A DNA stretch of 64,000 bases from assembly GCF_031769215.1 (NCBI RefSeq), contig NW_026782437.1, positions 186,001 through 250,000 on the forward strand, read 5' to 3'. Position numbers and translations under genes: made by a program. Below the pieces are notes generated by a model. That model made no database searches. It saw only the letters and a program-made list of their open reading frames with translations, and was not told the origin of the DNA. Origin of the DNA: Ylistrum balloti (taxonomy: Eukaryota). Each line of letters opens with the position of its first letter. The first letter of the stretch is position 1. Shown piece by piece: positions 13,898 to 51,384 of this stretch.

Positions 13898-16188
13898 TCA
13901 CATTTCTTCATGGAATAGCTGAGTTGCCAGAACTTCTCCAGTCACGATTGTCTGACAACCAGCATCAACCATTCCTTTCTTAGTCAACGATGATTTTTCA
14001 TCCGAGATTCCATTTGTGACTTTTGTCTTCTTTACTTCTTTCAATGTCTTCTCATCCCGGGGACTATCTCCGAGAACAGACCTGTTCATGTAATATCTCT
14101 CGGCAACCATAGAGAGCGTCTGGTTGTCGGAGTCATCACTAAGGTCAAGGTCATCAACATCCTTCATGGCATCCAGCTCAGTGTGTTTAAAATTCCACAC
14201 AGGCACAACACCAGTCCCACTTGGAGCTGCATCAGTGAAGGCATATTTTATACCACCAACATTGACTGGAGTCACTGGGACGTTAATGTTGGCATCATTT
14301 AGCTCCGGAATAATCCCCCTCATTTCCTCGTCAATGTTAGCTATAGGGCTTGGCGGTTCCTTATAGGGGACCCCATCTATAGGCAACTGCAGGCGGGTCG
14401 CCACACGCTCAATAAGATCTTCTATTGACTCGTGTTCTTTCCAGATCTTTGTGGCTCTCCATCTTGCTCTACTTCCCTTGGGTGCAGGGATAGCATCAAA
14501 ACAAGCCATCTCTCCCACACACAAGATCTTATGTAGATCATCAACATGTTTGCCAAATATTGATCTGTCAATAAAGACGTGCTCATGTCTTCCCAAGTCG
14601 ATGATACCCCACAATTTTGCGACGTGATATATACGTCCTTTACGATTTGTGACGGTAGGTTTTGGACTAGCAGGAGGTCGACTTCCTGTGATGATGACAT
14701 TGAGACGAGCACTTTTTATCACTGACACCATCTCGTTCTCACCAATGATGAATATATTGGAGTGGTCAACAAGAAAATGTTGGAGTTCTTGTTTACTCCA
14801 CCCCACAGTGTTGCGTAGGCTTTCAGGTGCCTGGCCAAAATGGTTGACCAAACTTCCAAGTTTCATGTCACCTTTCTTCTCTATGATTCCCTTGATAAAC
14901 ATCACGGCCTTATACTCATTAGCAGTCATGGTGGTAGGTCCTGTTCGGGGACTTGGTGTGGGCAACTGTTTCATAGGGGAACGTGGTGACATGACTGGAG
15001 ATTTGGGCTCAAACACTTCGAGCGACTTTGGCCTCCTCTTTAGTTTTGGTGTATGCTGTGTAGGATATGTATCTTTCTCCAAATATGATAAATTTGCACT
15101 GTATCTGTTGTTAAAGTTCATATCCTCTAAAGGCTCGGAGTTTGGATTCACAGCACTATATGTGATGTTGTCTTTTAAACAGGCATTATCGCCTTTTAAC
15201 TCAAAAATCAATGGATGCCGCAAAAGCCATTCTCGAAATTCGTTCTGTGGTCCAACACATTCTCTGATTTCCAAAGGTGCCTGAGAAAGATGTCCTGCCA
15301 GGCTTTTGATCGGCATCCATTTTTCACCCCTCTTCAGCAGTTTCGCTCGAAAAAATTGCACAGCTTCTGTTTCTGTAGAAACCTCTGGTGCACTTGGGCC
15401 TGATGATGTTGATGCAGGGCTGCTTTCTCGAAAATTTCTCCCAAGGTTGGCAGTTCCGTCATTAAGACTTATCTGATAAAGTAATGACAATTTGGTTTTT
15501 TTTTAAAGAAGAAATTGCAGTATTACAATGTTATCATATTTTTGGATTTTACATAAATTAACAAACTGTATACAATGGGGATTTGAAGATCCTTTTCATA
15601 ACTCTTTTTGTTAATTACCACTGCTTTTTTAGAAGTTAGTTATTAAAGAAAGAAAGAGAATAGAAGTTCTTATAACACAACCAGTAGATGATTAGAGTGT
15701 GATGTTTTGATGACTACATGGTCACCTTAATCAGACATATGACCAGTATGGAGCATACTAACACTGACGTATGTAGTGCACAAGATGGTACATAAATACT
15801 AATTTTCAGAATTAAACTTTTCAGGTATTTGTAAAATTAACAAAACTTTGGTTTCTTTTCTGCAAATGGTTTCTATAAGACAAGAAATAAAATTTCATTT
15901 TCCCAAATGAAAATACACAAAACTTCAATGTGTTAATTTGTCATTAAGCTGACAATAAGACTTCTATAATCTACTTACTAGGTTTCCGTTTACACTAAAC
16001 AAGGACGGATATTTCTGAAGGAACTTCTTCAGTCCAGTTTCATTGCCCCCAGCTGACTGTCTCATCTCGGCTGTAAAGTTACGGCTGCCAAAGCGGCCGG
16101 CCAGCTGACTGATGGTCAATGGAGCATTGCTGTGCATTAGGATCTCCAAAAAATACAACATAGCTTTGTGTCCAGGATCGTCAGCCAT
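13898..16188 (-). CDS. Egalitarian-like RNA-binding protein: 3 LOTUS/winged-helix (Egl-type) repeats, a cold-shock/OB-like domain and a C-terminal LC8-type motif; 594 aa. Coding exons 16188-15979 and 15472-13898
   Basis: Exon 1 MADDPGHKAMLYFLEILMHSNAPLTISQLAGRFGSRNFTAEMRQSAGGNETGLKKFLQKYPSLFSVNGNL closely resembles the Egl N-terminus (FTKEMRQIAGGSQSGLKKFLAQYP, from memory). Repeat 2 is EAVQFFRAKLL..PIKSLAGHLSQAP..EFREWLLRHPLIFEL; repeat 3 is KAVMFIKGII..SLVNHFGQAP..ELQHFLVDHSNIF. The donor CTA|gtaagt (15978) and acceptor tttatcag|ATA (15473) join in phase 0. Confidence 0.85.
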
Positions 16189-24721: not shown

Positions 24722-27700
24722 ATGTGGATTCTAGACACTATTTACTCCTTTTTTTGGAACTCGCTGCTAGATTTCGTTTTCTTTATTATTATCGACGCTT
24801 TTGCAAAGATAACTCTGGGAGATTCCAGGTAAACATTGTGTAATTTTGTTACATTCAATTATACACGACTTGTCACGGTTAAGAAATTGATGCCTATTTA
24901 TATAAAGCCTGTAGCTGCCTTGGCCACTCGTCATTGTTAAGTGTTAGGCTACGTGTATTTCTTCATTTACTTAAGATGTATGAACAGGCATGAAATAACT
25001 ATCGTTGATGTTACGCATAATTTTCATTTTAACTAACATAAATACTTAATGCATACTCAATTTTGCTTTTATTGTGTATTCATAGATGTTGTATCTTAAT
25101 TCTCATCTGGAAATCCCCTTTTCTATAATTATACACCAGAAACTGATAACTGTTAGTACTGCATGACATTGCTGTACTTTGTTACAGCAGTGTCGCATAT
25201 AACGTATCATACGTCCCTAGTTTCAGGGATAAATAAACGGTGATGAACTTATAACAGGCGCCACAATAACTAAGCCAGTCTATTATCAGGCAACATGTAG
25301 CTAAGAGATAGTCATTATCTGTTATTGGATATCAAATCAGTATAGAAGCATAAAAACGAGGGATGAATAATAAAAATTGAAACCAATCTCAGTCCATAAC
25401 TTTATTGTACTCTGTCATTTTATGACAACCATATTGCACAACTCTGATGGATTTTATGATTGTTGGAATTTAAGCTGCAGAAGTTCAGTCAGAAGTCATT
25501 GATAAGGCATGTGTATATATTCAAAAGTACATTAAAAACTTTTCCCAGCCCTGACAAATTTGCTTGAAGTGTACATGTTTTTAATATTTTGTTCTTTTGG
25601 GTCATTTTAGGACTCCAGAAGAAAAGAAAACAATATGGTTTGGGGAGTCTGTCATCCTGGCCTTAACATCTATCATCATCTATTTCTGCGATCACACCCC
25701 AGTTGTTCTCATCAGCCTGACTGTGGTAACTTTTGTATATACCCAGTCAAGTGGAATGGTCAGTATCAGGAATTGGTACATTTCACTAAAGACACGATGG
25801 GAAGAGTATCAGCAGCATCAAGACAGTGTAGAACGTATGAAAATTCATTTGAACAACCAACAGGCATACTTTCGCTCGGAGCAGGTACGACAAGAGGCTG
25901 CTCTGAGGTCAACGCCTTACAACAGAAATGCACCTCCTTTTCAAATGCAGCAACAGCGACATGGAATGTATCCTGTTAAGCCTATTCAACAAAATCGAAT
26001 GGGCTTCCCTACCAATACGCAAGCAAATCTTGGACATCAGCAGAATTTCAACCCCCAAAACAATGCAATGCCACAAACACAAAGTCCAAGTTTTTGGTCC
26101 AGATTGCCAAGAATGAGACTGCCTAATGCATTCAAACGTTCTAATGTTTCTTCAACTGCCAACACAAGTTCAAATGATGACCATTATCAGCTGAGGAAAG
26201 AAGAGTACAGTTTTTCTACTGAAGTTCAATCAAATTTAAGATCTAATAAGCAAACTCCAACAGGAAAAACTGACTATTCCCCTCCGATAAAGCCATCTTG
26301 GTTTGGTGAGAATTTGGGGCGCAGACCTCTACGGCGTGGCATCTCTGGGTATCCAGAAAGTTACAACTCAGAGAGTACTTCTCTTAAAAATAGATTCATC
26401 TCAGCATTTGGATTTTCATCCACACCTGAAAAGCCTCCTGGGTTGAGGAATGAGGGACAAAATTTATGTTTTATGAACAGTATTATACAGTGTTTAGCAA
26501 GGACGCCCAACTTGACTCAGTCCTTGAGTATAGAATCTTCCAAAGAATCTGAATGCACAATGGAAGAGTCCTTGCTATTGACTTCCATTGTAGAAATTAT
26601 TGAAAACTGTAAAGTTAAAGGGAGTGCCAAAGTGTTAGATCCTATTGCATTCCGCCAGGCAGCATCCAGTCTCCCTAACAGTGTGGTGGCACTGCCTACA
26701 CAGAGACAGGCACAGCAAGATGCAGCAGAGTTCTATATGTGGTTCATGGATACACTTCATTGTCTTCTTAACAAGAACAGGAAGAGTAACTCAAAAGGTA
26801 AATAGAATAATAGGCAGTGAATTTAATTTTCATATTAAAGTATTTCTAATCTGGAAATATGTACCAAATATTTGTTTCAATTCATATCGTCTTATCTTTA
26901 TTCTTAAACATCAGAAGGCTATGATATCATTTTCAAAAGCATTTACCAGGTAGGTCTTTAGGCAACTTGAAAGTGGAAAAATACTGTACTGGTATATTTA
27001 TATCATATACAAGTGGTCACTTGTGGCCTTGATTTTATTGTATAATGTATACAGCACATAGAAGTCGGCCTTGAGCGTATTTTAATTTAGTGAATGTATT
27101 CTTCATAAAAATTCATTTTAGCTTGTCATTATGTCGGAGAGTAAGGAATGTTAACACAGAGAAACTTGACTGTTGACAAATTTTCTGTTAACAGGGCTAT
27201 GGTAGTTTTCTTACACTGCATGCACAGTTAACATGATTGATTTCTCTGGATTTATTGAAATGCTATTTTATGACATAACATAGGTGAATACTTACCAACT
27301 CATTTACTTTTTTAGGAGAAAAAAATTCCAAAACAAATGAAAGATTAAAGACCCTGAAATTTATCTATGGAGACCTCAATCCAGCTAAACTACAAGACCT
27401 AAAGTCTGCCTGTAAACAAGAGGTATGTTACCCCACTCTCTGTTAATAATACTGTGTACATTTAAAAAGGAAGTGCTACCACAACATTTACGAGCTGAAG
27501 AAAGCAACAATAGAGAATGTTTTTGTTTGGATGTAATATGTTACCAATATGTACCATTCATTTAAAGAAAACTTCTGGATTTGATGGTGATTCATGATTT
27601 TAAGATAATGTTCCAAGTCAGTCAGAACATTTATGTATGAGGTACTAGTTTTCTAGAGATTGATTCATTTCAAGTGAAGTAAGTTAAAGTGTACCCTGAG

Positions 27701-30542
27701 AGGTCAGCTATGTTGACCTTGAAAAATAGTTCTGCACATAAAATACACTATGCCGAAAACGCGAATGCCGTGGAATGTTCCGTTACTGAGAAATTGCGAC
27801 TTTTCTGAAAAACACACCTTTGGCTGAGAGGCGTTGACCTCGTTTTCGGGCACCCAAACCTGTGACGTCATAAGTTCAACGCTTTTGTTGATGCAGCCAT
27901 ATTGTCTTTACTGTGCTACATGTGATTGTGATCTATTTTGGGATTTTCCGTGGTAATTTCTTTATTTATGTGAAAGTACTTCACATCTTCGCAATATCTA
28001 AGGTAGTGAACGAGGGGTCGGTGAATTAGCGCTTAAATCCGCTAAAATGGCTTCCTATCGAGGAGGGAGGCGGTGTGTATGGTTGTCCTAACACTAACAC
28101 GGATGGAGTGTCGATGCATGACGTCGATAAATAAAACTGATTGTTGATTAAATAAAAGTATATTTGTTAGGTTGATATTTTGTTATTAATTCTACAACTA
28201 AACATTTTAAATTGATAGGCTAGCCTATGACTTGGGCGGTCATAGGAATATTATTCCTTCGTAATCGTGAACGCCTAATACTCGGAGAAGGCCTAATCGT
28301 GAATGGGTCACGGGAATTTTCACACCGAGAATTTTCATACTACTATTATATAGTATAGAATAGAATTATTAGAATTTATAGAATAGGTTATGTGTGTATG
28401 TTGTTTGTATAAGGTGTATTTGGTTTTTAGATCTTCCAGCAGACGATGTTGTTTAGTTATTAATTTTGCGATCGTAAAAATAACAATAAGATCACCAATC
28501 TTGATTTGAAAACACAGTTCACAGTGTAGAGATGTCATCTAAACTCATAATCACACCTGTGCCAGGTTAGGTAATTAGCACCTCTGTGGCTGGAAAAAAC
28601 AATTGTGACACCTGTGAGGTGACACGCCTGTCGGCTAACAACAGACGCGTACCAGTGCTAGGGTAAAAACCAGTCAAATAATTGTTTAAACTTCTAAAAC
28701 ATCAAATTTTTATTATTAACACAGCGGAGGGTGTTATAATTGGTTGTTGACACCCTATCTATATATATCCATAGTGCTACGAAAATTCCCTGGAAAGAAA
28801 AATTCCCCTCGGACGAAACTTCTTCGGTAAGAAAATTCCCGACACCTCGTGAATGTATGCATAGTCTTGCACAAACGCGATTTCCCAACGTCAGAAATTA
28901 TTGATCGAGACTTGAAGGTAGTGAAATTAGTCCAAAACCACGCCCAATTTTATTTTGTTTCTTTGAAATGACGATTCACTGTTCGACTACTTTCACGACT
29001 ACTGATGAGACCCAGTGAAGTACGTGCCAATCTATGTTGCCCAAGCGATCGTCCCTTTTCGAAGGGTCATTTTCCTCCTCACTGGATACATCGTCTTGTA
29101 ATTCCAGTTCAAATCGGTAGGGCTGGATTCCGTCTTCAGAAATATCATTCACACCATAATCAGACTCCTCAAAACTCATGCTCAAATCGCTCTCAGTTGC
29201 AGTGTCGTTGTCACTGTCAGTCATGTTGACTGCCATTTCTGTTGAACTTATGACGTCACGAGTAGAAGAGCCTCGATTCGGCGGAAATGACGATTCGGCT
29301 GATTAGGTCTGGGTGGACAGGTGAAAATCGACAACTTTGAGCTTTAATAACTCGACACTGGGGTGACGGATTTTGACGGGGTTTTCATTATTATTATATT
29401 TACGGCATTCTTAACATTATATCTAAATATAAAATTACTCTCAGGGTACACTTTAAATTCTCCAACAAATTTATAAGAAATTAAGTTAATGAGTTCATAC
29501 ATTGTTGTATGTGTTAAATCACTTGTTGTAGATTGATCAAGCTCATGGTTTACAAAACAACTCCTATGCAGAACCAGTACAACGTCTTTCAGACTTGGAG
29601 TGGTTAACTTATAAAGCTGAGAACAACTCCGTCATAGATAACTCCTTCACCGGTCAGCTAGTCATTGGCTATCATTGCCTTACTGACAACCGTATCACAG
29701 TCAACATGCAGACATTCAATATACTCCCTGTGCCTATTGTCTCTCCAAGAGAAGTCTCTGGACTAGTCATGCTGGCTGACTGTTTTACCACATTTTGTAA
29801 TGTAGAACATCTGACTGGACAGGATGCTTTAGATCACAGCTCATGGTGTCCTGCCGCTGAGAAATGTACTACTCCAGTTAGGGGTCCTTTTACGCCGTCA
29901 GCCACGAAGGTGAATGGGAGGAAGAGAGGTTTCTCCAGCCTAGACTCTGCGGTAGGTAGTCTTGGATCACCATTGACTGGTAATCCAATGTCACCTATTC
30001 CAAACAATGGGGAGTTTGTCAATGATAGTGGCTTTCAGGATACAGTGTTCAAAACCTCCACCCCTATAGCTGATGGCCAGATTAGCTTTGTTCCTCAGCA
30101 TCAAAGGTTAAAGGATGCACAGAGAAGATGTCTTCTTCGTCAGTTACCAGAATGTCTTGTCATTCAGCTAATGAGGTTTAACTATAATCCATTCTCAAGA
30201 CAATCTAGCAAGGTTCTGGCTCCAGTATCTATTCCCCTGCGGGATCTGGACCTAACACAGATCATGTTTGACACAGTAACAAACAGGGAGGACCTGTCAG
30301 CACCAGAGCATAGTCACAAATATGATCTGTATGGAGTTTGTGTCCATCTCGGTGCAGACACGACCAACTATGGCCACTATATTAGTTATTGTCTTCAATC
30401 AGAAAATAACACCTGGTACAAGTTCGATGATGAAGATGTCACTGAAGTCAACATGGAGTATGAATTGACAATGCGTGAACTAAGAGAAAATGCATACATA
30501 CTCTTCTACAAAAAAGCAGCAACAAGCCCGTCTCAGTCCTGA
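24722..30542 (+). CDS. Ubiquitin-specific protease (peptidase C19/USP) with a hydrophobic N-terminus; 803 aa. Exons 24722-24828, 25611-26797, 27316-27422, 29532-30542
   Basis: Cys box GLRNEGQNLCFMNSIIQCL, QQDAAEF, LPECLVIQLMRF, His box YDLYGVCVHLG..NYGHYISY, and WYKFDDEDV; the C/H/D catalytic residues are intact. Junction phases 2/1/0 give 2412 nt (803 aa plus stop). The N-terminus MWILDTIYSFFWNSLLDFVFFIIIDAF comes from exon 1. Confidence 0.9.
28047..28134 (+). pseudogene. Frameshifted THAP zinc-finger N-terminus (transposase remnant) inside the Kolobok element
   Basis: ATG GCT TCC TAT CGA GGA GGG AGG CGG TGT GTA t GGT TGT CCT AAC ACT AAC ACG GAT GGA GTG TCG ATG CAT reads MASYRGGRRCV/GCPNTNTDGVSMH, a THAP C-x3-C..H start, with one frameshift and a stop at 28132. 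Confidence 0.6.
28976..29236 (-). pseudogene. Truncated KolX / P2X7-ballast-like ORF inside the Kolobok element
   Basis: Acidic N-terminus followed by GIQPYRFE..SSEEE..RLGNIDW, the lead-in I recall for 'P2X7-like' transposon accessory proteins. The expected Cys cluster after W is absent (deleted, or lost with a following exon). Confidence 0.55.
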
Positions 30543-48900: not shown

Positions 48901-51384
48901 CATCAAATTTTTGGAAATGGTGCTCTGGATTCACCAGAAAAAATCCTACAAAAATTACTGGGCAAGGTGTTCCCATCTATAATGTATCTAGATAGGATAG
49001 TGTTCCAATTTCATCAATATCAGGGATATTGCTTATATAACAGTGAGCTACAAGTCTTAAATTTCACCAATAACAGGGGTTTTGTGTCCTCATTCAGGGG
49101 TAATGGGAAACATTGCTCCTCGTTGAAAATTTTTTTACATACTTTCCTCCATGTTAAAATTTGAAGCCGTGGTGATCCTTGCAGTAAAATGACCTAAAGA
49201 GCTACCTTGGCCTTCGATAGGCTTTTGTGAAATGGTGATTACCTTGGCTTCCAGCATGGCTTGCATAGTATGTGTGCTGGCTGGTTGCTGTTTCAACTGG
49301 ACCTTAATCTGTTCCAATTCATCTCGCAGGTGGCTGTTTTCCTGAAATTAATATAATACATGTAACAACATTTACTTTAAAGAAAGAGCTCATCTTCAAC
49401 TATGAAATCCAACTAAATAATATTAATATGTCACGACTAAAAAATATCTACCTGACCTTAAGACATGTCAGCCAAAACTTACAATTTTGTTAAGATAAGA
49501 AAAAATAAGATCTTTTTGACACTGTAAGGTCAGAATATATTTCATATGAACCGATGTCTCTGAGACAAATTTATAATTTTACCTCTTTCGACTCAGTGAG
49601 ATCTCTCTCTCTATGACCAAGTGTAGACTGTAGTTGTCGAACCTTTCTTTCACCTTCGATGACTGATGTTTGTAATTTTTCCATTTCTTGTCGTTCAGCT
49701 TCTATCTTTTGGGCAGAACTAGACAATCCCTTGCTTTGTAACATTTCTAACAATTTTTTAATACTTTCATCTCTCGCGGATAATGTCTGCTTTTGTGTTT
49801 CGATTCGAATCTCCATTTCTTCCACTGTCTTTTTCAGGATCACAATCTCTTTGGATTGTTTGTCTTTTTCCCGTTGTAAAATTTCGATTTCTTGTTGTGA
49901 TATTTGACGACTGACATCAACATCTTCACATCCAAACAGCTTTGACTCCAAATCCTTGATGGTAGATGATTGTTTCTGTACAAAAAAAATGATAAATTGA
50001 AAACATTTTTACAGTATCTTTTATTTGAAAATAATGAACAAATATAATACACTGGGTAATAGGTTGGATCAAAATGTTTTCATCTATTTCCACTTCACAT
50101 CTATCCTGCACCATTTCTTAAACATTTACCACCCTAAAGACCTATGGGTTTTCTTTGAAATTAATTTTCACTTTGATTTGAGAATAACATCAGTAACATT
50201 ATAATGTAGCTTATAGGCTAACACTCTAATTAAATGTTCTATTGTGACCCAAATTGTGCATCTGGGGCTTCAAAAGAATTTGGATGTATCTTTATGAATG
50301 TGGATAGCTAATTCAAAACATCTAATTAAAAGCTACTGTTTAACATGAGTTTTGCAATGTATTGTAAAAATATGTCGTATTAAACCATATTAATCACCTT
50401 GAATTCTGCTTGTGCTACCTTCAATTGTTCATTCAACAAGCAATATTTGGCACTTTCTTCTTTTCTTAACGCTCTCTCCTTTTTCAATTCAGGACTCCAA
50501 AATGTTTTAATGCTATTCATACTGGAACTCAGTTTATCCTTTGTAGAATCTAACTCCTGCTGCATTTTGGCACATTCTTTGTTCAAATCAGCTATTTGGG
50601 CTTGAAAATCTAATATCAAAGTATCCCTAAAACTTCTCATATCTTGGTCACGATAATGTTTCATTTCCTGAGAATTAAACAATTGTGTCGTATAATCTGG
50701 TCTCTCTGATGACCTTGATCTTCCAAAGGGCTGTTCTGAACGTTCCAACGACCTTGCACCCATGTGAGGGTATTCTCTATCTATGGACCTATCACATTTG
50801 TTATTCGCAGAAAAACCTAATGAAGATCTTGGACTTCCCGCAGGACTAATACCTATATCTCCTCGTGCAGAGAGTTGTAACCTATCTAAATTTCGTTCCA
50901 ATGATCGTTCACCCATGAAAAGTCCATGCTGGTGATCTCGTTCGTATCGATCCTTTAAAGCTCTTACATTAAGACTATTTGTATTACTGTTTGTAGGACT
51001 ACTGTAGGGACTTTTGGATGAGCTAGGTGATGGCATGGTGTTGGCGCTACCGATACCATCTACCATACTGTAGCTGGACCCATGATTCATACTGGGGTAC
51101 CCAGCTGTGAAGGACTGCATTGTCTCATTTGGAAGATTGATTGCACTATTAGATCCTTGGTTTCCTTGTTTCTTGTCATCTTTTGATCCACCAGAACTCC
51201 TCCTCGACCTGGAGAAAAGATTTTTCGGTAGAGAACCACTGAACAATTTATTACCGGACCCATGACTCGGACTCCTGTTATTTGCCTTGTCTGAACTATG
51301 TTGCTCGTTCGGTCTATCCTCTGGACTGTGTTCAGCCGAGGATGTCTGCGACTGGGAACGCTTCTTGGATTTACTTCGAAACAT
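39977..51384 (-). CDS. ERC1: ELKS/RAB6-interacting/CAST (ERC) active-zone coiled-coil scaffold, about 1119 aa. Exons 51384-50398, 49975-49583, 49341-49243, 48356-48201, 47519-47352, 46899-46732, 46142-45982, 45668-45545, 45260-45120, 44545-44352, 43847-43712, 43188-43057, 42533-42379, 41554-41407, 40174-39977
   Basis: Signature ERC motifs: ELDSTKDKLSSSMNSIKTFWSPELKKERALRKEE, IETQKQTLSARDESIKKLLEMLQSKG, RIEELEEALKESVKITAEREM, HLEEVYEMKQEAIQAAISEKDANIALLEM, TQNRMKLI. All 14 introns are GT-AG with consistent phases. The gene is co-orthologous to vertebrate ERC1/ERC2. Confidence 0.93.
41076..41455 (-). repeat. 84-86-bp tandem repeat made of the last 50 nt of ERC exon 14 plus 36 nt of intron including the GTAAGT donor
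   Basis: Unit starts (ctgtac) at 41115, 41199, 41285 and 41371. Donor copies lie at 41148, 41234 and 41320, with the native donor at 41406. Confidence 0.92.
42812..43065 (-). repeat. Degenerate 28-45-bp tandem repeat copied from the ERC exon 12 donor (AAG|GTATTGAAGAGTTCAGGTTAT)
   Basis: Donor-like copies at ~43012, 42973, 42942, 42908, 42876, 42848 and 42820, after the native donor at 43056. Confidence 0.8.
44911..45035. mobile_element. Probable CORE-SINE fragment
   Basis: ggtaaaaggtcttgcccaagacacaac resembles the CORE/MIR motif (tgacttgcccaaggtcacac), followed by a degenerate tRNA-like segment. Confidence 0.4.
46405..46560. repeat. About two copies of a ~75-bp intronic tandem repeat
   Basis: taaccctgtataat(t/c)t(g/a)gacacct..ata..c.gacct..aactagg(t/c)ccca occurs at ~46417 and ~46486. 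Confidence 0.6.

Follow-up and report, generated by a model that had tools for sequence, protein, structure and literature searches.

What becomes of a dynein-dependent mRNA adaptor when its exonuclease-like module is missing? Of the machines that select mRNAs for transport by dynein, Egl-BicD is the best understood, and in the fly complex the ExoHD-XAD unit of Egl makes up half of the RNA-binding pocket. To our knowledge, Egl-BicD has been studied almost solely in Drosophila. The question is raised by a locus of the scallop Ylistrum balloti, found at positions 13,898 to 16,188 of the analyzed window (a stretch of 64,000 nucleotides, positions 186,001 to 250,000 of contig NW_026782437.1). A preliminary description, made from the sequence alone, had proposed that it encodes an Egalitarian-like protein with three LOTUS/Egl repeats, a cold-shock/OB domain in place of the exonuclease domain and a dynein-light-chain-type tail.

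Gene model and locus

The locus contains a protein-coding gene on the minus strand with two exons (16188-15979 and 15472-13898), which together give a spliced product of 594 aa. Its parts are as follows.

15979..16188, minus strand: coding exon 1 (residues 1-70), with the start codon ATG at 16188, ending in ...SVNGNL, with donor GTAAGT at 15978
15473..15978, minus strand: intron of 506 nt, GT...CAG, with acceptor CAG at 15475-15473
13898..15472, minus strand: coding exon 2 (residues 71-594 and stop), with the stop codon at 13900-13898

The product is identical at 567 of 594 residues (95.5%) to the annotated Mizuhopecten yessoensis LOC110457286 protein, and the exon junction is the same. Expression and splicing of the gene in Y. 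balloti are read from this identity with the annotated Mizuhopecten model; the sole public run covering the locus is made up of DNA contigs, which continue through the intron. The intron also carries a very high-copy repeat of ~45 nt (about 15654-15707).

Three winged-helix domains of the Egl type

Pfam detected three WH_Egal domains (PF23713) in the protein, of which the first falls in exon 1 (E 7e-22) and the other two in exon 2 (E 4e-37), in agreement with the spliced 594-aa protein with three Egl-type repeats that had been anticipated. Following the nomenclature of fly Egl, they are listed as ED1 to ED3.

15979..16170, minus strand: ED1 (WH_Egal 1, residues 7-70), Pfam E 7e-22, final ~5 residues in exon 2
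15167..15370, minus strand: ED2 (WH_Egal 2, residues 105-172), from Pfam, phmmer alignment to fly Egl and conservation
14717..14932, minus strand: ED3 (WH_Egal 3, residues 251-322), from Pfam and AlphaFold2, immediately upstream of the OB domain

These domain matches are far above chance level. In the AlphaFold2 model the helices and strands of the three N-terminal modules reach pLDDT >90, and a Foldseek search with the whole model returned as best matches the Egl chains of the Egl-BicD-RNA cryo-EM entries 9rvy-9rwb. Judged by sequence, ED1 appears nearest to fly Egl ED1, the one that binds BicD CC3 and dsRNA: it aligns to fly Egl residues 13-73 (phmmer E 2.6e-15), with a mean column identity of 72% over 46 spiralians. 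However, the base-contacting His31 and Cys35 of fly Egl ED1 are replaced by Ser and Gly at the scallop positions, so that base preference there is probably different. In ED2, an A-G-H-x-S-Q motif shows no variation across 74 sequences and corresponds to fly Egl Gly124/Ser127, which have been described as RNA contacts (PMC13186709). Since RNA binding by fly Egl does not need ED3 (PMC13186709), an RNA role for the scallop ED3-OB pair is conjecture.

The EDs of Egl are known to resemble LOTUS domains at the level of the fold (PMC13186709). Of the combined LOTUS/Egl label given to the repeats in the preliminary description, the Egl part is upheld by the WH_Egal matches and the LOTUS part is not, as Pfam OST-HTH/LOTUS (PF12872) had no match in the 594-aa protein at E<=1. 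Likewise, Oskar/TDRD LOTUS chains were absent from the first 50 structural neighbours of the whole model (Foldseek). Sub-threshold Pfam matches to PORR, DUF4743 and wHTH_TTC3 were read as generic winged-helix likeness.

A predicted cold-shock domain downstream of ED3

ED3 is followed by a basic linker and a small beta-rich unit.

14642..14716, minus strand: basic linker (residues 323-347, pI 12) with a near-invariant NVIITGSRP strand, from conservation and AlphaFold2
14435..14641, minus strand: predicted divergent cold-shock/OB-fold domain, 69 aa (residues 348-416), from AlphaFold2, fold searches, hhalign and conservation

The beta-rich unit had been placed at 14441-14646 and read as an OB/cold-shock domain. 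AlphaFold2 indeed models it as a five-stranded OB barrel (b1-b2-b3-short helix-b4-b5, core pLDDT about 90), with the core re-placed at 14435-14641. In Foldseek and other structure searches, its structural neighbours were all S1/CSD-type OB folds, with Z of 6.2-9.3 over 63-81 residues (rmsd mostly 2.3-4.3 A) against CSD/S1 structures overall; VIA Z was 9.3-8.1 against S1 domains and 6.5-6.9 against the CSDs of Lin28 and Unr. At the level of sequence, the scallop domain stayed under the Pfam threshold for CSD (PF00313) and S1, with no CSD match at E<=1, and the OB profile found nothing meaningful among PDB sequences (best E 0.77; no solved CSD matched). Comparison by hhalign joined the scallop-type OB to copies from relatives picked for their Pfam CSD matches (98%, E 2.3e-13), of which 3/7 lie above the 27-bit cut-off (40.2, 28.4 and 27.3) and 4/7 below it (20.7-25.4 bits). 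With neither Pfam nor PDB matched directly by sequence, the connection between this OB and cold-shock domains is structural and transitive only. The modelled identity of the central region, a divergent cold-shock domain, is new here.

With a pI of 9.6 the domain is basic, and it is the best-conserved region of the protein, with 26 invariant columns in residues 348-416 (67 sequences). An RNP1-like L-W-G-I-I lies on b2 and an RNP2-like H-V-F-I-D on b3, and both W358 and F370 are invariant; Ile occupies the second RNP1 aromatic position and Asp the RNP2 His position. Canonical YGFI / VFFH motifs are seen in the homologous copies of relatives. An invariant cluster formed by H353, D362, H366-E367-H368 and D372 is atypical for a CSD. 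With Ile in RNP1 and Asp in RNP2, RNA binding by the domain is putative.

The C-terminal half and its dynein-light-chain-type tail

The folded part of the AlphaFold2 model after ED3 comprises the 69-aa OB barrel and one helix only, the remainder being of low confidence. The XAD/EHD four-helix unit was not seen in this model, where only isolated helices are present (420-431, 450-457 and 528-535), and a Pfam search of the 594-aa protein gave no exonuclease family at E<=1. With the OB domain directly after ED3, the proposal that a CSD/OB occupies the place of fly ExoHD-XAD was borne out. The C-terminal half is occupied by a long acidic disordered region with conserved short motifs, residues 433-571 being predicted largely disordered (AlphaFold2).

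14192..14242, minus strand: conserved linear motif (F)TDAAPSG(T/A)GVVPVWN(F), family consensus, low pLDDT
13901..13969, minus strand: dynein-light-chain (LC8)-type tail VDAGCQTIVTGEVLATQLFHEEM (residues 572-594), aligning to fly Egl 960-981

The alignment of the tail to Egl 960-981 is part of the full-protein phmmer match and by itself scores 1.2 bits (i-Evalue about 9e2). As the segment is weak on its own, it counts mainly through conservation across the family: Q, T, T, A and T do not vary among 74 sequences, and a matching xQT[LIV]xTG[DE] tail is found in flatworm, priapulid, spider and centipede relatives. The alignment and the invariant residues together agree with the tail type that had been suggested.

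Genome context and the spiralian family

The protein had been viewed as a possible second adaptor beside a canonical egl, and the surrounding system as poorly described. Neither view held. A six-frame, exon-by-exon scan of the 648-Mb assembly, which very divergent or intron-split EDs could escape, found no second WH_Egal gene outside the locus, and this single occurrence makes the gene the scallop counterpart of Egl. In addition, a 2025 Development paper (PMC12579938) already describes a spiralian Egalitarian-like family that includes planarian Egal-1 (Smed-egal-1, dd_8302). The architecture reported there consists of three N-terminal modules, a conserved central region of 67-71 aa and a C-terminal dynein motif, without an exonuclease site; the central region is common to molluscs, annelids and brachiopods (and planarians), is limited by the paper to Spiralia and is assigned no named fold (PMC12579938). 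RNAi of planarian egal-1 leads to ectopic posterior notum expression, microtubule depolymerization separately gives the same result, and the authors leave the degree of biochemical similarity open (PMC12579938). The scallop-type OB profile finds flatworm members at E about 1e-40. The scallop protein is the single scallop member of this Egal-1 family, and we infer, with a probability of roughly 0.6 for the explanation as a whole, that it is an RNA adaptor for BicD-dynein.

Possible partners are encoded in the same genome, namely a BicD with a highly conserved CC3 (aligning to fly BicD 611-773, E 5e-59) and intronless copies of LC8. A complex prediction of scallop ED1 with two scallop BicD CC3, run without an alignment and without controls, gave a median score of 0.21 relative to a mark of 0.34 and speaks neither for nor against binding.

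Relatives outside Spiralia

Priapulid, spider, tick and centipede proteins also contain the OB domain, in 3-6 copies and in every case together with WH_Egal; many of them end in the same tail. With the scallop-type profile, the OB of the Priapulus, spider, tick and Strigamia proteins is found at E 1e-7 to 1e-22. This occurrence in priapulid, chelicerate and myriapod proteins is new and, as far as profile matches indicate, widens the Spiralia-only range of PMC12579938. The Priapulus ED region, used as query in a word search, matched nothing but itself. P0229, searched in the same way, proved to be a rotifer member and not an insect one.

A relation to nematode LIN-66 had been suggested with reserve, and it stands as a lead only. 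An Atlas nematode cluster named 'Lin-66-like winged helix domain-containing protein' ranks second by features for the whole protein (0.84) and, when the OB model is compared by shape, second again (TM 0.59, 88 residues), both under the Atlas lead threshold of 0.9. PF26288 (Pfam 38.1 WHD_lin-66) is present in 99% of the cluster members and WHD_Egal in 20%. Of the 120 spiralian relatives listed, 14 had precomputed PF26288 matches, 'faint' where graded, and the Mizuhopecten orthologue had none; as direct support for LIN-66 membership these matches were downgraded on account of this 'faint' grade. LIN-66 requires its CSD for function and is reported to be nematode-specific, rich in low-complexity sequence and without a known dynein/BicD link (PMC11184513; bioRxiv 10.64898/2026.07.07.737059). 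By Atlas features and shape, nematode LIN-66 is a possible relative of the scallop protein.

A wider reading is offered tentatively, and as a joint proposal we would give it rather less than even odds. An Egl/LIN-66 superfamily spanning the protostomes, possibly the bilaterians, may have ED3, CSD and dynein-light-chain tail as its ancestral core; in it, spiralian ED1-ED3 with CSD and tail would be the near-ancestral state, the ExoHD-XAD that Egl has in insects and nematodes would be a later replacement, and LIN-66 and the chelicerate/myriapod multi-CSD proteins would come from the same gene. If true, a heterochronic/translational regulator would be joined to the mRNA-transport machinery. The possible kinship with LIN-66 and the chelicerate multi-CSD proteins would broaden a family now handled as two unrelated ones.

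Proposed function and alternatives

In our preferred reading, the scallop protein would serve as a cytoplasmic RNA adaptor for BicD-dynein. ED1 would dock onto the C-terminal coiled coil of BicD, while ED1 and ED2 would read RNA helices via helix 2. The ED3-cold-shock-domain pair may act as a third RNA-contact module, probably for ssRNA or loop RNA, substituting for ExoHD-XAD of the fly, and LC8 at the tail would dimerize the adaptor or couple it to dynein.

The main function could instead be LIN-66-like, with the winged helices as accessory RNA or protein binders and dynein transport not the main role. This is suggested by the shared ED and CSD architecture, by the second rank of the Lin-66-like cluster in both features (0.84) and shape (TM 0.59), and by the need of LIN-66 for its CSD (PMC11184513; bioRxiv 10.64898/2026.07.07.737059), the OB being the most conserved part of the scallop protein. 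We nevertheless regard it as unlikely, given the 'faint' spiralian PF26288 matches and Atlas scores below 0.9, and because two features point toward a motor link, the closeness of ED1 to the Egl ED1 that binds BicD and the conserved dynein-light-chain-type tail. LIN-66-like and BicD-dynein roles can coexist.

The cargo of a BicD/LC8-linked adaptor might also be protein, with the OB as a protein-interaction or small metal/ligand-binding module. The S1-like domain of DBC1/CCAR2 binds SIRT1, and superantigens contain OB folds. The DBC1 S1-like domain was one of the best compact matches, with TM by target of 0.71-0.74 and Z of 7.1, the H353, D362, H366-E367-H368, D372 cluster is unusual for a CSD and RNP1/RNP2 are aromatic only in part; yet the basic character of the domain (pI 9.6), structural neighbours that are nearly all RNA binders and relatives' copies with YGFI / VFFH motifs, some of which (3/7) pass the Pfam CSD threshold, render this option improbable. 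The preliminary description had also raised a granule scaffold and the recruitment of Vasa-type helicases by LOTUS domains. In such a germ-granule scaffold, the LOTUS-like domains would recruit and activate a Vasa-type DEAD-box helicase in the manner of Oskar and TDRD5/7. EDs are structurally LOTUS-like (PMC13186709) and Oskar/TDRD use their LOTUS domains to bind Vasa (Jeske et al. 2017, cited in PMC13186709), but the protein has no Pfam OST-HTH/LOTUS match at E<=1, its nearest structures are Egl EDs, and in Egl the EDs bind BicD and dsRNA, not Vasa (PMC13186709). The suggestion thus found no support and we consider it very improbable.

Returning to the BicD-dynein adaptor, molluscs, annelids, flatworms, rotifers and brachiopods retain both ED1 and ED2 as well as the LC8-type tail, with a cold-shock domain substituting for ExoHD-XAD. 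The presence of this domain instead of ExoHD-XAD suggests that the conserved RNA-selection core is probably ED1-ED2 and that the third module is exchangeable. Lambert and Nagy reportedly observed in 2002 that many mRNAs localize on microtubules and centrosomes in early cleavage of Ilyanassa, and we know of no adaptor for mRNA localization in spiralian cleavage. The scallop-type Egalitarian-like gene is an obvious candidate for this cleavage-stage role.

Comparison with known systems

Drosophila Egl (PDB 9rvy-9rwb; PMC13186709) has in common with the scallop protein ED1-ED3, the Gly/Ser contact positions of ED2 and a C-terminal DLC-type motif. In contrast, fly Egl contains ExoHD (DEDDy) and XAD where the scallop protein has a 69-aa OB after ED3, and is longer (1004 aa versus 594 aa). 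Both ExoHD and XAD, traits of Egalitarian sensu stricto as represented by fly Egl and nematode EGAL-1, are absent from the scallop protein. Canonical CSDs (PF00313: CspA/B, YB-1, Lin28, Unr/CSDE1) and S1 domains form the same five-stranded b1-b2-b3-helix-b4-b5 OB barrel, while the scallop OB differs from canonical CSDs by an invariant H-E-H turn before b3, the RNP1 Ile and the RNP2 Asp. The Priapulus, spider, tick and Strigamia ED and multi-CSD proteins are 860-1390 aa in length with 3-6 OB copies, compared to one in the scallop, and usually have just one ED, for which the ED3 type gives the best score, without a clear ED1. LIN-66, compared by Atlas features and shape, combines an Egl-related winged helix (WHD_lin-66) with a cold-shock domain, like the ED and CSD of the scallop. 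Finally, planarian Egal-1 has three paralogues, whereas the scallop has one gene, and shares with the scallop protein the three winged-helix modules, the central region, the DLC-type tail and the absent exonuclease site.

Gene structure and domain composition

The Egalitarian-like gene consists of two exons:

16188-15979, minus strand: exon 1, residues 1-70, with a GTAAGT donor at its end
15472 to the stop codon at 13900-13898, minus strand: exon 2, preceded by a CAG acceptor

The spliced product is 594 aa long, as the preliminary description had it, and is identical at 567 of 594 positions to the annotated Mizuhopecten yessoensis LOC110457286, in which the exon junction is the same. Compared with the window, a public DNA run holding the locus shows four differences in the coding sequence (14111, 14180, 14906 and 14921) and, within the intron, two further ones plus a 1-nt indel at 15494; this looks like allelic or individual variation (about 99.7% identity). 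Also within the intron, a ~45-nt segment at 15654-15707 reaches a summed word depth of about 64,000 in the DNA run versus 10 in its flanks, and hundreds of contigs terminate there; it is therefore a very high-copy dispersed repeat. Elsewhere the window carries two exons belonging to a USP/UCH deubiquitinase (25597-26805 and 29595-30542, plus strand) and an exon similar to the N-terminal end of ELKS/CAST, a RIM-binding active-zone protein (50380-51384, minus strand).

Pfam recognized three WH_Egal domains (PF23713), here ED1 to ED3; exon 1 holds the first (E 7e-22), exon 2 the other two (E 4e-37). The same scan of the protein returned no exonuclease, cold-shock domain (CSD) or LOTUS/OST-HTH family at E<=1. 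Of the three LOTUS/Egl winged-helix repeats proposed earlier, the Egl part stands, the LOTUS part is unsupported at the level of Pfam families, and the claimed absence of an exonuclease is borne out. In an AlphaFold2 model built from a 74-sequence alignment, ED2 and ED3 are confident winged helices, residues about 344-415 form a confident b1-b2-b3-helix-b4-b5 unit followed by a single helix (420-431), the C-terminal half is of low confidence and a terminal hairpin is weakly confident. Within a region predicted to be disordered lies (F)TDAAPSG(T/A)GVVPVWN(F) (window 14192-14242, residues 480-496), near-invariant in spiralian homologues and a likely candidate for a docking motif.

A cold-shock-type OB domain in the conserved central region

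Work on planarian egal-1 described a central region of 67-71 aa conserved in spiralians, left its fold unnamed and considered it limited to Spiralia (PMC12579938). We name that fold here as a divergent cold-shock domain, in agreement with the cold-shock/OB reading first made from sequence. Folded in isolation, the beta-rich domain reached a core pLDDT near 90, and Foldseek searches against the PDB returned OB-fold nucleic-acid-binding domains only, among them the LysRS anticodon-binding domain, RNase E and ribosomal S1 domains, NusA S1, the S1-like domain of DBC1 and the cold-shock domains of Unr, YB-1 and CspB. A VIA search, independent of Foldseek, gave Z scores of 9.3-8.1 to S1 domains and 6.5-6.9 to the CSDs of Lin28 and Unr, at an rmsd that was mostly 2.3-4 A across some 70 residues. 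By language-model features the domain alone lay nearest to CSD/S1-like clusters (0.85-0.89), a lead only.

No CSD was matched when the OB-domain profile was compared with the sequences of solved structures, and the assignment therefore needed a bridge. An exhaustive search with this profile retrieved 160 clusters at E<=0.001. WH_Egal was present in all 17 stronger matches scanned (one below the cut-off) and in 38 of the 50 weaker ones scanned. Of these 50, 12 also matched Pfam CSD (best 3.2e-10); in the tick protein P0199, Pfam CSD scored above threshold (28.4 bits) on the very stretch covered by the OB profile. Aligned by hhalign with seven copies selected for their Pfam CSD matches (three above the 27-bit cut-off, four at 20.7-25.4 bits), the scallop-type profile gave 98% probability (E 2.3e-13, 76 columns).

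With a pI of 9.6 the domain is basic, and no other part of the protein is as conserved (mean frequency of the commonest residue 0.79, versus 0.74 in ED2 and 0.71 in ED3). RNP1 reads L-W-G-I-I and RNP2 H-V-F-I-D, with Trp358 and Phe370 invariant; in contrast to canonical CSDs, Ile replaces the second RNP1 aromatic and Asp the RNP2 His. An invariant His/Asp/Glu cluster, unusual in cold-shock domains, is found at window 14570-14620 (residues about 353-372: H353, D362, H366-E367-H368 and D372) and might bind a metal or specific ligand.

Distribution and a putative ED3-CSD module

Molluscs, annelids, nemerteans and brachiopods have homologues of about 590 aa; rotifers and acanthocephalans have related members, and parasitic flatworms longer forms. 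Outside spiralians, we newly found WH_Egal proteins with the OB domain in 3-6 copies, many with the same xQT[LIV]xTG[DE] C-terminal tail. The ecdysozoan carriers include Priapulus, the spiders Parasteatoda, Stegodyphus, Uloborus and Nephila, the ticks Dermacentor and Haemaphysalis, and the centipede Strigamia. Among deuterostomes, a tunicate RING protein also carries the domain: in Clavelina lepadiformis, P0198/P0272 (1008-1016 aa, named RING-type E3 ubiquitin transferase) combine an ED-like N-terminal winged helix with three OB copies. One protein among the weaker OB-profile matches also matched RING_ZNF598; together with wHTH_TTC3 cross-matches, this hints at a link of Egl-type winged helices to RNA-binding E3 ligases.

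HMMs built separately from spiralian ED1, ED2 and ED3 typed the one ED found in the chelicerate and centipede proteins mostly as ED3, with modest margins, and Priapulus showed ED2, ED2, ED3 and four OBs. Together these results make ED3, which adjoins the OB, and the CSD look like one conserved module. The wider distribution of ED3, CSD and tail is worth following, as is a lead to LIN-66, discussed below.

Presumed partners and possible functions

A six-frame, exon-by-exon WH_Egal scan of the 648-Mb Y. balloti assembly gave no match beyond the gene's own three domains, and therefore found no egl combining EDs with an exonuclease; within the reach of such a scan, the suggestion of a second adaptor beside an exonuclease-bearing egl was not upheld. 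BicD is present as a long ORF (C-terminal region versus fly BicD 611-773, E 5e-59). LC8 is encoded by intronless genes, six of them full-length Dynein_light ORFs in a roughly 40-kb tandem cluster (contig C143:209846-249013, L004-L009), with further copies on contig C1052; dynein light chain genes are expanded in this scallop.

We regard the gene as the scallop's orthologue in the Egal-1 family, carrying an OB domain of CSD type (probability about 0.9). The analysis shows which domains the protein has, how conserved they are and that the genome carries conserved BicD and LC8 genes; a role as BicD-dynein RNA adaptor is, by analogy with the fly, an even bet or slightly better. From fly structures (PMC13186709), ED1 would dock on the C-terminal BicD coiled coil CC3 and, with ED2, read RNA minor grooves; LC8 would make the adaptor dimeric or link it to dynein.

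A LIN-66-like translational regulator is possible, at perhaps a one-in-five level. LIN-66 depends on its cold-shock domain and has been described as nematode-specific (PMC11184513; bioRxiv 10.64898/2026.07.07.737059). Pfam 38.1 includes a WHD_lin-66 family (PF26288), and a nematode cluster of the Atlas, a resource of protein clusters, carries it, with 20% of members also matching WHD_Egal. This cluster is second-nearest to the scallop protein by features (0.84) and, in the comparison of shapes, to the OB model (TM 0.59, 88 residues), both under the trust threshold. Because of these scores and the faint PF26288 matches on spiralian proteins, in a comparison made with the Atlas cluster, the kinship stays a lead. 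That the OB domain instead serves protein or ligand binding is unlikely, almost all its structural neighbors being RNA binders, and a Vasa-recruiting granule scaffold is the least probable reading for winged helices that match WH_Egal.

Comparison with known Egalitarian proteins

The system had been thought poorly described, yet PMC12579938 (Development 2025) already sets out the family, with three N-terminal modules common to Egl, a C-terminal dynein motif and no clear exonuclease site, and reports ectopic expression of notum at posterior wounds after egal-1 RNAi and, separately, after microtubule drugs. The scallop protein is a further member, not new in kind. Among solved structures, sequence comparison gives it a single relative, Drosophila Egalitarian in 2026 Egl-BicD-RNA cryo-EM entries. 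Scallop ED1 aligns with Egl 13-73 (E 2.6e-15), ED2 with Egl 99-164, and the final 22 residues with the dynein-light-chain region, Egl 960-981, an alignment weak taken alone that agrees with the dynein light chain-type C-terminus proposed before. The ED2 positions Gly124/Ser127 (fly numbering) are invariant in the family (A-G-H-x-S-Q), whereas the ED1 positions His31/Cys35 are Ser/Gly in scallop, so that specificity at that site probably differs from the fly. Fly ED3 is divergent, not visible in structures and dispensable for RNA binding (PMC13186709); in the scallop, an ED3-CSD unit would replace the exonuclease homology and adjacent tetrahelical domains (ExoHD-XAD) as the third RNA-contact module.
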